Shown here in pieces: positions 995 to 13,472 of a stretch of 13,769 bases of DNA; within the stretch, counting starts at the first letter, position 1; every line of letters starts with the position of its first letter. The stretch is taken from the sequence record NC_028256.1. One strand, given 5' to 3'. The notes under the pieces are model-generated. The model did not search any database and had not been told where the DNA came from. It was given only the letters and a program-made list of their open reading frames with translations. The position numbers and the translations under genes were made by a program.

Positions 995-1261
995 TCACCC
1001 CGTTATTATTGCGCCTATCTTTTCCAGCACCTGCTCGCCCGCCTTGGTCAGGTAGTACTTGCCCTGCCCGTTCTTGTCGACAAGGTTCAGCGCGAGTAGC
1101 TTCTGCATGAGCCCGTGTGCGCTGCTGGGTGGTATGCCCAGCGAGTCGCTTATCTCCTTCAGGCTGGCCCCCTGGGGCTTCTCCCTCAAAAAACGCAGAG
1201 CCCTAAGCTCTCGGACGGAAAGCCTGTCCAGCCAGTTCACACTCGACACCTCACAGACCAA
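995..1261 (-). CDS. wHTH transcriptional regulator, MarR/ArsR/IclR-like (88 aa), candidate repressor
   Basis: Classic HTH (ASLKEISDSLGIPPSSAHGLMQKLLALNLV) plus wing YYLTKAG. TTG start at 1261 lies about 25 nt downstream of a TTAAATA box (1290-1284), which suggests a leaderless mRNA. Confidence 0.85.
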   Translation of the reverse strand: MVCEVSSVNWLDRLSVRELRALRFLREKPQGASLKEISDSLGIPPSSAHGLMQKLLALNLVDKNGQGKYYLTKAGEQVLEKIGAIITG

Positions 1262-1361
1262 TTCCTAATTTGGAATTTGGAAATATTTAAGTGTTTACCA
1301 TTTGGAATTCCAGTTTCCATTTTTAAACTTCCAGATTTGGAATTAAGAACGGGTTTCTACG
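1262..1361. promoter_or_regulatory. Divergent promoter region with repeated operator-like boxes
   Basis: AT-rich. TATA-like TTAAATA on minus (1290-1284) and TTTTAAA on plus (1321-1327). ATTTGGAA at 1268, 1275, 1300 and 1335. Boxes TTCCTAATTTGGAA (1262-1275) and TTCCAGATTTGGAA (1329-1342). Palindrome TGGAATTCCA (1303-1312). Confidence 0.8.
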
Positions 1362-2021
1362 GTGGCGCTCAGAAAACCCATAGTAAGCCCCACCACAGCA
1401 TCTATACTAATACTACTACTACAGAGGGCCCAAGCCTCAAGCGTCGAGCTGGCCGTCGAGCTGGGCGTCTACCCCAGCCAGGTCAACGCCTATCTGCATT
1501 ATTACAGGAAGCAGGGTATAGTCGAGAAGAGCGGCGATGTCTGGCGGCTCACAGAAGATGGTTTAAAATATGTGCAGGAGCGCTATGATTATTTAACTAA
1601 TGTGGCTTCGGCTTTCGGAATAAAAATTAATAAAGATGAATCAAGAAGAATAAATCTTTATTCCGAAATTAGAAAGGTCGCTGTTGAGTGGCTCAACGGC
1701 CACGAGGATTGCCTGTTTATCGTCGACTTCCTGGCTTTCCTATATTTCGAGAGGGGTAAGACGTACTTCGAGGCTGGACGGGGGCTGGCCGACAGCCTGG
1801 CAGAGGCCCTGGAAGAGTATAGTAGTGGTGGTTATGTCAGCCCCTTCCGCGTCCAGGAGTGTCTCGCAGAGCTGTCCCAGAGGGGCGTCGTCTACATCTG
1901 GCGGGGGCGGAAGGTCAGGCTGGCCAAGCAGCTTATAGAGGCCGCCCGAAGACAAGCTCCCGCAGCTCCCGCAGCCTCTCGACCACCTGGACGCCCTTAT
2001 CCGTCAGGCGGACGCATTTAA
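1362..2021 (+). CDS. Tandem winged-helix protein (219 aa), candidate replication initiator or regulator
   Basis: N-terminal wHTH (SSVELAVELGVYPSQVNAYLHYYRKQGIVEKSGDVWRLTEDG) and a second wHTH-like unit (PFRVQECLAELSQRGVVYIWRGRKVRL). GTG start downstream of TATA 1321-1327. Confidence 0.8.
   Translation: MALRKPIVSPTTASILILLLQRAQASSVELAVELGVYPSQVNAYLHYYRKQGIVEKSGDVWRLTEDGLKYVQERYDYLTNVASAFGIKINKDESRRINLYSEIRKVAVEWLNGHEDCLFIVDFLAFLYFERGKTYFEAGRGLADSLAEALEEYSSGGYVSPFRVQECLAELSQRGVVYIWRGRKVRLAKQLIEAARRQAPAAPAASRPPGRPYPSGGRI
1613..1668. repeat. Perfect 12-bp inverted repeat flanking an AT-rich 32-bp spacer
   Basis: TTTCGGAATAAA (1613-1624) and TTTATTCCGAAA (1657-1668). Spacer 1625-1656 has 6 G/C in 32 nt. 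Confidence 0.85.
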
Positions 2022-2217
2022 CCCTTACACCCTTCTCCTCGCTAAAACAAACCGTCTCCTCTATGAGCCCTAGCCTCTTAAGGTGCTCCACGTTCTGGTA
2101 GAACGAGCCCGACCCAGCGAAATCTATAATCTTATGCTGGGGGAGCTCCCTAGCGTTATACCTTATAAACGTTAATAGAAACTTCTCGACGCCGCCGCGC
2201 TTAAACAACAGCTCCAA
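1933..2217 (-). CDS. MarR-like wHTH protein (94 aa), reminiscent of SSV1/STIV F93-type regulators
   Basis: Recognition helix SFYQNVEHLKRLGLIEE, wing hairpin ending VRLTDKG. TATA-like TATAAG at 2260-2255 upstream on minus. Confidence 0.8.
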   Translation of the reverse strand: MELLFKRGGVEKFLLTFIRYNARELPQHKIIDFAGSGSFYQNVEHLKRLGLIEETVCFSEEKGVRVKCVRLTDKGVQVVERLRELRELVFGRPL

Positions 2218-2265
2218 GGCCTCTCTACCAAGGCTTAGTTTTGCCTGTGTAATTCTTATATGATA

Positions 2266-2281
2266 ATTCGGTATACCGAAT
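2266..2281. promoter_or_regulatory. Perfect 16-bp palindrome, putative operator
   Basis: ATTCGGTATACCGAAT is its own reverse complement. It lies next to the TATA-like box of the 94-aa wHTH gene in a divergent intergenic region. Confidence 0.7.
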
Positions 2282-2565: not shown

Positions 2566-2739
2566 TCACTTCCCGAATGTTGGCTCCTCGGCTAAGAGCT
2601 CTTCCAGCTCCGCCTCGTACAGTTCTATAGCCTCTAACGCCCTCTTACGGGCCTCTGGCCATCCCGCCAGCCTCATGTTCATCTCTCTCTTGAGCTTAAC
2701 CAAGAGCCGCAGGATGGCCTCACGCTCGCAGCCAGACAT
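2566..2739 (-). CDS. Small charged alpha-helical protein (57 aa)
   Basis: Manual translation MSGCEREAILRLLVKLKREMNMRLAGWPEARKRALEAIELYEAELEELLAEEPTFGK. ATG 2739 preceded by GGTGG..GGTG; GAG/AGG/CTG codon usage like the real genes. Not in the ORF track. Confidence 0.7.
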   Translation of the reverse strand: MSGCEREAILRLLVKLKREMNMRLAGWPEARKRALEAIELYEAELEELLAEEPTFGK

Positions 2740-12272: not shown

Positions 12273-13472
12273 ATGTGGGGTGAACCCCTCTTGTATGGAG
12301 CTGGAGACTCGACTGTAACATTGGTGCCTAAACCCTTGTACGTGTACGTCCACACCGTCAAGAGCAAGGGCAGGATATACCAGTACCTCGTCGTAGAGGA
12401 GTACCTCGGCCAAGGCAGGCGTAGAACCATCCTCAGGATGCGCCTCGAAGAAGCCGTAAGGAAGCTGCTAAACAATGAAAAGAAGGACAGCGCCGAAACC
12501 GCAGGGTGGTGCGGGGGGTGGGATTTGAACCCACGCAGGCCTACGCCAACGGGTCTTAAGCCCGCCCCCTCTAAGCCATTCTCATCGATGGTAATTGAAA
12601 AGAGAGATTCGGGTGATGGAGAATCGGAGCCTAGTTTTAAGCAGGATGGAGGGTTGATTGTTTCTGAAACTCTGGCTTCCAGGTTTCTCGAGTGGCTGGA
12701 CCTGCCAGAGGACTCGAGGCAGCTGAGGGACTACAGGAACAACCTGAGGCTGCTTATAGGAAAGCCACTGGACTGTGCTACTCTCCATGAGTTCGCTAGC
12801 CAGAGCAAGAGGAAGTATGAGACCGCCTCGAGGCTGCTGAGCTTCGTGGCCAGCAAGAGGGGCTTGGGGCTTAGGCAGCTTGCAGCGGAGCTTAGGGAGT
12901 GCCTGGGCAAGAAGCCTAGGAGCGGCAGCGACACCTACGTGCCCCCAGACTCGAGTATCCTCGAGGCTGCTAGAAGGCTCGAGGGGACTAGAGTCTACCA
13001 CGTGTTCCTCCTGCTGGTGGGCTCGGGTGCCAGGCTCTCCACGGTACACTGGCTGCTGCGCCAGGGCCTCGACTCCTCGAGGCTAGTCTGCCTTGAGGAT
13101 AGGGGGTTCTGCAGGTACCACGTCGACTACGTTAAGGGCGAGAAGCTCCAGTGGGCCCTCTACAGTCCTAGGGAGTTCTGGGAGAGAGTACTCGAGGAGC
13201 CCAGGCTAACCCTGTCCTACAACAGGGTCCAGGAGCAGATAGCGGGGGCTGGCGTCAAAGCCAAGCACATTCGAAACTGGGTCTACAACAAGATGCTATC
13301 CCTAGGGATGCCCGAGGGCGTAGTCGAATTCATAGTAGGCCATAAGGCGTCGAGCATTGGAAGAAGACACTACATGAACATGATAGTCCAGGCTGACATG
13401 TGGTACACAACATACTTGCCCGTAATCCCGAAAAGCCTTAAACTAAGCTGCACCACATGCTATGAGGGTTAA
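12273..13472 (+). CDS. int: SSV1-type tyrosine integrase, partitioned by attP on integration
   Basis: Catalytic residues R (SGARL), K (VKGEK), HxR (KHIRN), H (IVGH), Y (RRHYMN). SSV-like N-terminal KGRIYQYLVVE segment; tRNA-derived attP read in frame. Start uncertain (ATG 12273, TTG 12321 or GTG 12324; the track uses 12231). Confidence 0.95.
   Translation: MWGEPLLYGAGDSTVTLVPKPLYVYVHTVKSKGRIYQYLVVEEYLGQGRRRTILRMRLEEAVRKLLNNEKKDSAETAGWCGGWDLNPRRPTPTGLKPAPSKPFSSMVIEKRDSGDGESEPSFKQDGGLIVSETLASRFLEWLDLPEDSRQLRDYRNNLRLLIGKPLDCATLHEFASQSKRKYETASRLLSFVASKRGLGLRQLAAELRECLGKKPRSGSDTYVPPDSSILEAARRLEGTRVYHVFLLLVGSGARLSTVHWLLRQGLDSSRLVCLEDRGFCRYHVDYVKGEKLQWALYSPREFWERVLEEPRLTLSYNRVQEQIAGAGVKAKHIRNWVYNKMLSLGMPEGVVEFIVGHKASSIGRRHYMNMIVQADMWYTTYLPVIPKSLKLSCTTCYEG
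12507..12570 (-). other. attP: 3' portion of tRNA-Leu(UAA) including anticodon arm, variable arm, T arm, acceptor 3' strand and CCA (not a complete tRNA)
   Basis: Minus strand reads AGGGG GCGGG CTTAAGA CCCGT TGGCGTAGGCCTGC GTGGG TTCAAAT CCCAC CCCCCGC A CCA. Anticodon TAA at 12558-12556; 5' acceptor strand and most of the D arm are absent. Confidence 0.93.

Follow-up and report, generated by a model that had tools for sequence, protein, structure and literature searches.

A predicted divergent promoter with three heptad-phased operators in a portable winged-helix gene cassette of the A. pernix provirus APOV1

To our knowledge, only a handful of archaeal-virus switches are understood (F55 of SSV1, the SNJ2 module and the repressors of phiH-type haloviruses), and we know of none among them that uses winged-helix proteins in a hyperthermophilic crenarchaeal virus. 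In phage lambda, the right operator places three sites, OR1-3, between cI with its promoter PRM and cro with its promoter PR. The F55 protein of SSV1 is a 6-kDa ribbon-helix-helix repressor of tandem direct repeats, ATAGATAG; its sites overlap the transcription start site and the TFB-recognition element (BRE) of early SSV1 promoters and of its own promoter (T5, T6, Tind and Tlys), with graded affinities, and it is a viral example of archaeal repressors placed over the start site and BRE (PMC5569661). In SNJ2 (Pleolipoviridae), the winged helix-turn-helix (wHTH) protein Orf4 binds a palindrome, represses the integrase promoter and maintains lysogeny, and induction depends on an Orc1/Cdc6 homologue together with an antagonist protein within an orf4-orf7-orf8 module (PMC10123103). 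APOV1 is a provirus in a tRNA-Leu gene of A. pernix K1 that is induced by reduced aeration; gene-sharing networks place it with the fuselloviruses, and its published profile mentions "several HTH proteins" and does not describe regulatory sites (PMC5882108). Here we analyse the gap between the divergent genes orf4 and orf5 of APOV1 in sequence record NC_028256.1 (a 13.8-kb genome with 21 annotated open reading frames, ORFs), using the whole stretch of 13,769 nucleotides as the window.

We consider it likely that this gap holds a promoter region with operators bound by the wHTH proteins of the surrounding gene cassette (orf4-orf7), that it controls two transcription units as the main site of transcriptional control in the virus, and that it is the best candidate for the control region of the provirus. 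The initial annotation placed two 14-bp imperfect palindromes here, and TTCCTAATTTGGAA and TTCCAGATTTGGAA indeed read at 1262-1275 and 1329-1342. Of the 14 positions, 2 distinguish one from the other, and within each palindrome the dyad holds at 6 of 7. The TATA-like boxes that it proposed, one for each direction, are likewise present as ATATTTAAG at 1283-1291 (read as CTTAAATAT on the minus strand) and TTTTTAAAC at 1320-1328. The A/T-only run of the leftward, minus-strand box begins 81 nt upstream of the orf5 start. On the plus strand, the rightward box, taken as ATTTTTAAAC at 1319-1328, has an A/T run that begins 43 nt before the orf5 start codon, and it resembles ATTTTAAAC upstream of orf9 in the same genome. 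From their placement we infer that both boxes act as TATA elements with start sites on their outer sides; a literature search for transcription start site data for A. pernix found none.

The two palindromes belong to a larger array, in which the cores of APOV1 are phased by 7 bp in three clusters of heptads, written here as F (nnnGGAA) and R (TTCCnnn). The cluster at 1262-1282 reads R-F-F (TTCCTAA, TTTGGAA, TTTGGAA), that at 1301-1321 reads F-R-R (TTTGGAA, TTCCAGT, TTCCATT), and that at 1329-1349 reads R-F-f, with a degenerate final unit (TTCCAGA, TTTGGAA, TTAAGAA). The left cluster, which we call O_L (1262-1282, no strand), consists of TTCCTAATTTGGAA followed by the heptad TTTGGAA at 1276-1282 and lies between the leftward TATA-like box and the orf4 start. 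Its counterpart O_R (1329-1349, no strand) consists of TTCCAGATTTGGAA followed by the degenerate heptad TTAAGAA at 1343-1349 and lies between the rightward TATA-like box and the orf5 start. A repeat finder returned a 21-nt direct repeat, 81% identical, between 1262-1282 and 1329-1349, as well as a 24-nt inverted repeat that sets 1260-1283 against 1321-1344.

The concentration of these motifs in the gap is far from random. The only two copies of TTCC-N6-GGAA in the 13.8-kb genome stand in the orf4/orf5 gap (0.20 expected), all four TTTGGAA heptamers of the genome fall inside 1269-1342 (0.74 expected), and 7 of the 29 genomic copies of TGGAA lie within 72 bp. The 121-bp intergenic stretch contains 8 GGAA/TTCC cores; among 20,000 dinucleotide-preserving shuffles of this stretch, one reached at least 8 cores, and the same frequency (1/20,000) was obtained for at least two palindromes. 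Chance or low complexity is ruled out as an explanation by the whole-genome and local dinucleotide shuffles, together with conservation in relatives.

That conservation could be followed in a small set of loci. We recovered nine relatives of orf5 (48-62% identity) from 5.8 billion protein clusters, and a profile search of 1.84 billion representatives returned only 75 proteins at E <= 1e-3, of which roughly 20 are full length, so the orf5 family is rare. The relatives compared here are about 10 metagenomic or metagenome-assembled genome (MAG) contigs encoding orf5 homologues, given as L-numbered loci, with one contig labelled as an Acidilobaceae MAG; positions in them are counted from the orf5-like start codon. 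Operator positions, orientation and half-site cores are kept although the proteins are only 45-60% identical, which bears out the conservation that the initial annotation named as a check. Nearly all relatives share the gap order O_L, leftward TATA, central operator (O_C), rightward TATA and O_R, and the operators take the form of a TTCC-N6-GGAA palindrome with GGAA half-sites added at a 7-bp spacing.

The individual elements are held in narrow ranges. O_L starts at -100 to -103 in relatives (-93 in L005), keeps its R-F-F heptad pattern in L002, L005, L008, L018 and L019, and is a perfect palindrome, TTCCTAATTAGGAA, in L018 and L019; the alignment of relatives shows no variation in its GGAA and TT core columns. 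The leftward A/T run starts at 77-81 nt in eight relatives (71 nt in L005) and the rightward run at 42-45 nt in 8 of 12 loci. An intact central TTCC-N6-GGAA is found at -69 or -70 in L002, L015, L016, L018 and L019 and at -60 in L005, and at O_R (-18 to -33) the relatives carry TTCCnnn together with TTCC-N6-GGAA. O_L and O_C are a constant 32-33 bp apart, roughly three helical turns; O_C and O_R are 35, 42 or 49 bp apart, corresponding to steps of whole 7-bp heptads. Read outward from each TATA box, the two promoters are alike (TATA, TTCCnnn, TTCC-N6-GGAA, start codon) and almost identical in L005, where the gap reads CTCAC TTCCTAATTTGGAA CTTGGAA GTTAATAAATC TTTCCCAATCTGGAA TCTGGGAAAAGG TTTTTATTG TTCCTAT TTCCGAATTAGGAA T-ATG. 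In the distant loci L037 (150-215) and L038 (665-740), the control region is compact, with a single palindromic TATA (CTTATAAG and TTTATAAG, respectively) flanked by 7-bp-phased half-sites of another type, TACC-GTATAC-GG(A/T)A. Given that these loci keep the 7-bp phasing with another core, the phasing is older than the GGAA core.

For the third, central site the initial annotation holds in part. The palindrome that it noted, TGGAATTCCA, is present at 1303-1312, but the operator conserved at this place in relatives is a third TTCC-N6-GGAA, and its APOV1 counterpart is TTTACCATTTGGAA at 1294-1307, degenerate in the left half; the TGGAATTCCA palindrome is specific to the APOV1 lineage. The central operator region of APOV1 (1294-1321, no strand) thus spans TTTACCATTTGGAA, TGGAATTCCA and the heptads TTCCAGT and TTCCATT (1308-1321). 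It overlaps the expected BRE positions of both promoters, and the outer arms of the central element, TTTCC and GGAAAAGG, fall on the places where a purine-rich BRE is expected for each; GGAAA(A)G stretches are also found upstream of the A/T runs. Because the arms coincide with the expected BREs, part of the central symmetry may be basal promoter sequence.

Both genes that face the gap encode wHTH proteins, as had been predicted: orf4 passes Pfam thresholds, and two winged-helix domains are modelled for orf5 (AlphaFold2). On the minus strand, orf4 (995-1261) encodes a small MarR/IclR-type winged-helix protein and is the first gene of a leftward operon, orf4-orf3-orf2-orf1. Its Pfam matches are HTH_IclR (40.9 bits, cut-off 22) and MarR_2 (32.1 bits, cut-off 27), and a PDB profile search returned generic wHTH matches (MarR, the N-terminal part of DtxR, AspA and PhiH1-repressor-like). 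With a length of 81-88 amino acids (aa), the protein is essentially a bare wHTH, lacking the dimerisation helices of MarR (about 140 aa) and the effector domain of IclR. The start of orf4 is ambiguous between the annotated GTG at 1240 (81 aa) and a TTG at 1261 (88 aa). The TTG adjoins O_L and would fit a leaderless mRNA. A putative Shine-Dalgarno-like GAGGTG (1247-1252, minus strand) lies 6 nt upstream of the GTG, and purine-rich GAGGTG or GGGGTG stretches occupy the equivalent place at orf4 in relatives.

On the other side, orf5 (1362-2021, plus strand, 219 aa) is the sole rightward gene of the pair. By sequence it gave only sub-threshold wHTH matches in Pfam. In the AlphaFold2 model (11 homologues, mean pLDDT 83.7, a predicted local distance difference test score), winged-helix domains at aa 10-73 and about 142-198 are joined by helices and a disordered linker (aa 84-90). 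Foldseek gave weak matches only, to MarR, ZitR, PF0095 and AspA, and ZitR was matched at 1.5e-4 in a PDB profile search. We assign orf5 to a rare, unnamed family with two wHTH domains. The N-terminal domain of the T4-type activator MotA, a marginal match (E = 9e-3), was not trusted as an orf5 relative.

In archaea, a repressor with its site between TATA box and start site keeps RNA polymerase from being recruited, and one bound over the BRE/TATA blocks TFB and TBP. O_L and O_R lie in the polymerase-blocking position and O_C lies over the predicted BRE/TATA elements, and we therefore propose a bidirectional promoter under the control of the cassette winged-helix proteins. Positions 1262-1349 would form a compact bidirectional archaeal promoter, with two BRE/TATA elements back to back, about 30 bp apart, embedded in the 7-bp-phased GGAA half-site array that forms three TTCC-N6-GGAA operators; O_L would lie between the leftward TATA and orf4, O_R between the rightward TATA and orf5, and O_C between the TATA boxes and over both BREs. 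The winged-helix proteins of the orf4-orf7 cassette would bind these operators. When O_L or O_R, which span the expected start sites, is occupied, polymerase recruitment would be blocked; occupation of O_C would keep TFB and TBP from both promoters. Acting as the reader of the heptads, orf5 would repress the leftward operon that starts with orf4, and its own gene as well once occupancy is higher. The orf4 protein, in a Cro-like position, would be the first product of the derepressed operon, and orf6 would autoregulate apart, through a palindrome of its own. Since APOV1 is a provirus that can be induced, we regard the cassette as the best candidate for maintenance and induction control.

Among the three operators, O_L tends to come closest to perfect dyad symmetry: four loci have 0-1 mismatches there, with none in L018 or L019, and O_C and O_R have 1-3 mismatches. 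Graded affinity of the three operators is therefore plausible on these sequences.

As to which protein reads the heptads, we weakly favour orf5 as the most likely candidate, from three comparisons. Heptads that vary in number and orientation would be better suited to a protein whose two DNA-binding domains are flexibly joined than to a dimer that is rigid and symmetric. The orf6 gene has its own, different operator, ATTCGGTATACCGAAT. Finally, in L037 and L038, where the operator has changed, the orf4 helix stays PSS(A/M)HG and the orf5 recognition helix changes (N42 to D or H, and YY to AL).

Compared with the right operator of lambda, the APOV1 gap is alike in having predicted divergent promoters within about 100 bp, three imperfect palindromic operators, DNA-binding proteins encoded on both sides and an inducible prophage as its setting; orf5 standing alone opposite an operon headed by orf4 also repeats the layout of cI opposite cro and the PR operon. 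The initial annotation went further and named the region a candidate lambda-like lysis-lysogeny switch. Of this, the divergent promoter layout with three operators is well supported, whereas the architecture of CI-type proteins (HTH_3 plus S24 peptidase) is not found in the cassette, whose proteins are winged-helix. The predicted promoters of APOV1 are of the archaeal TATA/BRE type, its 14-mer operators are extended by 7-bp-phased half-sites of variable number and orientation, and a cleavage-based route of induction is not evident. Its protein architecture places the region outside the CI/Cro family. That the gap works as a bistable maintenance/induction switch in the lambda sense is a tentative reading, to which we give slightly less than even weight and clearly less than to promoter-operator control as such.

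The two archaeal systems compare differently. SSV1 is also a crenarchaeal temperate virus with sites over the start site and BRE (expected positions in APOV1); unlike F55, the APOV1 candidates are wHTH proteins, their sites are TTCC-N6-GGAA palindromes and heptads, and an F55 homologue is not in the cassette; the region falls outside the F55 family. The SNJ2 module shares with APOV1 a virus-encoded wHTH protein, a promoter palindrome and a multi-gene regulatory module conserved among relatives, but the operators of APOV1 are confined to the divergent promoter of the regulators themselves, and its cassette has no Orc1/Cdc6 gene.

Several observations weigh against operator control by cassette proteins, or against its extension to a switch. 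Operators of the same type on both promoters predict co-repression rather than a toggle, unless affinities differ. O_C of APOV1 itself is degenerate in its left half, and in L015 and L016 the O_L is F-F-F, three direct heptads with no palindrome, a poor fit to a symmetric dimer. The covariation argument for orf5 comes from two distant loci, L037 and L038. In orf4, orf5 and orf6, Pfam found only winged-helix families and no S24 peptidase; a sensor or self-cleavage domain is absent, and the wHTH assignment of the 128-aa protein orf1-128 is a weak, sub-threshold Pfam match (E = 0.019). Integration is hinted at in one relative only (the tRNA-Gly of L005, described below, with no integrase similarity).

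The distribution of the motif bears on a simpler explanation, namely plain negative autoregulation, in which the operators would hold the divergent regulator pair at a steady low level and have no role in lysogeny or induction. Such autoregulation is common at MarR/PadR-type loci, and it would account for operators of one type at both promoters. We searched APOV1, L002 and L005 for a wider regulon with palindrome scans (allowing up to 3 mismatches) and scans for phased pairs (TTCC-N6-GGAA, GGAA-N3-GGAA and TTCC-N3-TTCC), and found nothing convincing beyond the gap except a site inside orf5. The phased patterns are confined to the gap in 5 of 5 matches in L002 (13.9 kb) and 5 of 6 in L005 (16.6 kb), and in APOV1 the motif lies on no integrase or replication promoter; both the confinement, with no regulon visible, and the bare integrase and replication promoters agree with autoregulation. 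On the other hand, the operon led by orf4 comprises 4 genes in APOV1 and 12-14 in L005 and L009, so control would exceed the regulator, and the cassette is the sole block retained across otherwise unrelated mobile elements. Taking both sides together, we consider plain autoregulation unlikely.

The retention of the cassette is evident from the gene content of the relatives. A small MarR/IclR-type gene pointing leftward, an orf5-like gene pointing rightward and a convergent orf6-like gene overlapping the 3' end of orf5 form the order common to them, L017 being an exception with a co-directional orf6 homologue, and orf4 orthologues adjoin every orf5 homologue. When all 21 APOV1 proteins were compared with the relative loci by tblastn, only orf4, orf5, orf6 and orf7 gave matches, and this also holds in two loci with 14-17 kb of sequence. 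These four genes therefore constitute a portable cassette in otherwise different elements. Beyond one marginal match, tblastn of orf5 against isolated viruses and plasmids returned only APOV1 itself. In IMG/VR, the orf5 profile returned only APOV1, and the distant orf5 relatives P0018 and P0023 were not found. A DNA-pattern scan of IMG/VR gave 15 other matches, mostly on low-GC contigs, with the full three-operator layout around none; L025, L026 and L029 (about 55% GC), also among these pattern matches, were left out of closer examination.

L005 sits in a 73-kb contig beside cellular genes. A tRNA-Gly(CCC) at L005 3074-3152 lies exactly at the junction between genes for a Hel308-like helicase and saccharopine dehydrogenase and the block of small ORFs with the cassette. 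The position of this tRNA suggests that L005 is an integrated element; no similarity to the APOV1 integrase was found in the 90-aa ORF that overlaps the tRNA-Gly.

The site inside orf5 found by these scans lies in an AT-rich element (1613-1674, no strand), which consists of inverted repeat arms at 1613-1631 and 1650-1668 (89% complementary over 19 nt) and an operator-like TTCCGAAATTAGAA at 1661-1674. A codon alignment of 11 orf5 homologues revealed a patch of synonymous constraint at about 1611-1668, with codon identities of 0.90 (2-fold) and 0.81 (3-fold or more), compared with 0.65 and 0.42 elsewhere. AT-ending codons, which are rare, are retained in the patch and make up 78% of it, against 35% of the rest of orf5. 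The patch encodes an invariant GIK(M/I)NKDES in the interdomain linker, a disordered segment in the AlphaFold2 prediction. The relatives have GGAATAAAGATGAATAAAGATGAAT...CTTTATTCC here and then TTCCAAA, TCAAGGA and TTAGGAA, and an exact TTCC-N6-GGAA is found at the equivalent place in L015, L016 and L018. To judge from these sequences, the patch is an element acting at the DNA or RNA level that uses the same half-sites as the gap. Such an element might serve as a fourth operator, acting as a looping partner or a roadblock; it might also be a promoter, internal or antisense, or belong to an origin. A second constrained patch in orf5, at 1812-1845 (0.83), covers EEYSGSSYVSPF; its serines stay AGT in nearly all relatives.

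The intragenic element, together with the two domains of orf5, raises the alternative of a replication origin, in which the heptads would be iterons for orf5 as a dual winged-helix initiator, the A/T boxes would unwind and the repeat inside orf5 would be part of the origin. The initiators RepA, RepE and pi of iteron plasmids have two winged-helix domains, and Rep proteins autorepress as dimers and initiate as monomers; the lambda origin lies inside gene O. APOV1 resembles the iteron systems in having a protein of about 200-250 aa with tandem winged-helix domains, inverted repeats at its own promoter and repeated half-sites. The half-site arrays vary in number and orientation, inverted arrays flank A/T-rich stretches, and the AT-rich inverted repeat in orf5 combines strong synonymous constraint with GGAA heptads. 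A cassette that is the only block shared by different small elements also behaves as replication modules often do. Against an origin, the A/T boxes are only 8-10 bp long, with no long AT-rich unwinding region, and have a promoter-like position 42-45 nt from start codons in most loci; at 7 bp, the units fall far short of known iterons (about 20 bp); APOV1 has a separate DnaA-like ATPase, orf19; and Rep, Rep_3, RepA/RepE, Orc1 and Cdc6 initiators are absent among the Foldseek and PDB profile matches listed, where no sequence or fold match to iteron Rep proteins was detectable. GC skew was discarded as an indicator of an origin, as it merely follows the coding strand. We therefore regard an origin as quite improbable.

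Origin and promoter-operator functions are not mutually exclusive. By analogy with the iteron systems, orf4-orf7 might be a combined replication and transcription module, with orf5 as a new dual winged-helix origin-binding protein and iterons both in the promoter and in its own gene. We see only an outside chance of this, for which the element inside orf5 is the main support. If true, such a module would account for the sharing of this one block among small mobile elements of Acidilobaceae-type archaea that are unrelated in other respects.

Weak matches of orf4 and orf5, by structure and by sequence, include AspA of pNOB8, and the sites could on that ground be a centromere-like partition site coated by an AspA-like small wHTH protein. 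We consider this extremely improbable: a ParA/ParB partner is absent from APOV1 and from the cassettes of relatives, the likeness to AspA is a generic winged-helix similarity, and the sites are placed relative to TATA boxes and start codons.

The other two cassette genes lie beyond orf5. On the minus strand and convergent with orf5, orf6 (1933-2217) encodes a 94-aa PadR/LmrR-like winged-helix protein. In its AlphaFold2 model (pLDDT 88.9), a wHTH of PadR/LmrR-like form has a long wing and a helix at the C terminus, and its best Foldseek matches are PadR-family and LmrR structures (E = 7e-4, template modelling (TM) score 0.5-0.64). The Pfam PadR score of 18.4 bits is below the cut-off of 27, and the protein is PadR-like only by this predicted fold. 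The 3' ends of orf5 and orf6 overlap by 89 nt (1933-2021), and an overlap of 35-60 nt is kept in most relatives; it could mediate transcriptional interference or antisense control between the two regulators. The predicted orf6 promoter (2255-2281, minus strand) has a TATA-like CATATAAG at 2262-2255 and, directly upstream, the perfect 16-bp palindrome ATTCGGTATACCGAAT at 2266-2281. This palindrome is kept upstream of orf6 in L002, L005, L008, L009 and L018 as TTCTTTATTCGGAACTCCGAATAAAGAA and variants, a form also written TTATTCGGAACTCCGAATAA. It is probably a second operator class, the autoregulatory site of the PadR-like orf6 protein. The fourth member of the conserved cassette, orf7 (2566-2739, minus strand), encodes a 57-aa helical protein for which no Pfam or PHROG match was found. 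It is the best-conserved member, with 65-73% identity to its homologues in relatives (63-76% by tblastn), and might, as a small protein, modulate or antagonise one of the wHTH proteins.

The sequence record annotates orf4-81 (995-1240, minus strand) as "HTH domain-containing", orf5 (1362-2021, plus strand) as hypothetical, orf6-94 (1933-2217, minus strand) as "MarR family", orf19 as a DnaA-like ATPase and orf21 as an SSV-type integrase. Inside orf21 we identified the 3' part of a tRNA-Leu(UAA) at about 12503-12565 of the window (minus strand); it comprises the anticodon loop CTTAAGA, a variable arm that is long, the T-arm GTGGGTTCAAATCCCAC and ACCA. Rfam and ARAGORN searches of the window reported no RNA family or tRNA; both are silent on this piece because the tRNA is partial. 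It is an SSV-type attP and agrees with the published integration of APOV1 in tRNA-Leu (PMC5882108).

The APOV1 genome and its HTH genes were already known. What is new is the tripartite set of heptad-phased operators, their conservation in a portable orf4-orf7 cassette, the separate orf6 operator and the constrained element inside orf5. An inducible provirus in the cultivable, sequenced strain A. pernix K1, combined with defined candidate operators, provides a testable entry to proviral silencing and its induction under poor aeration. The shifting arrays of 7-bp half-sites and the element in orf5 raise the question of how DNA recognition by small winged-helix proteins works at about 90 °C, and the four-gene cassette is a marker for related mobile elements in hot-vent metagenomes.

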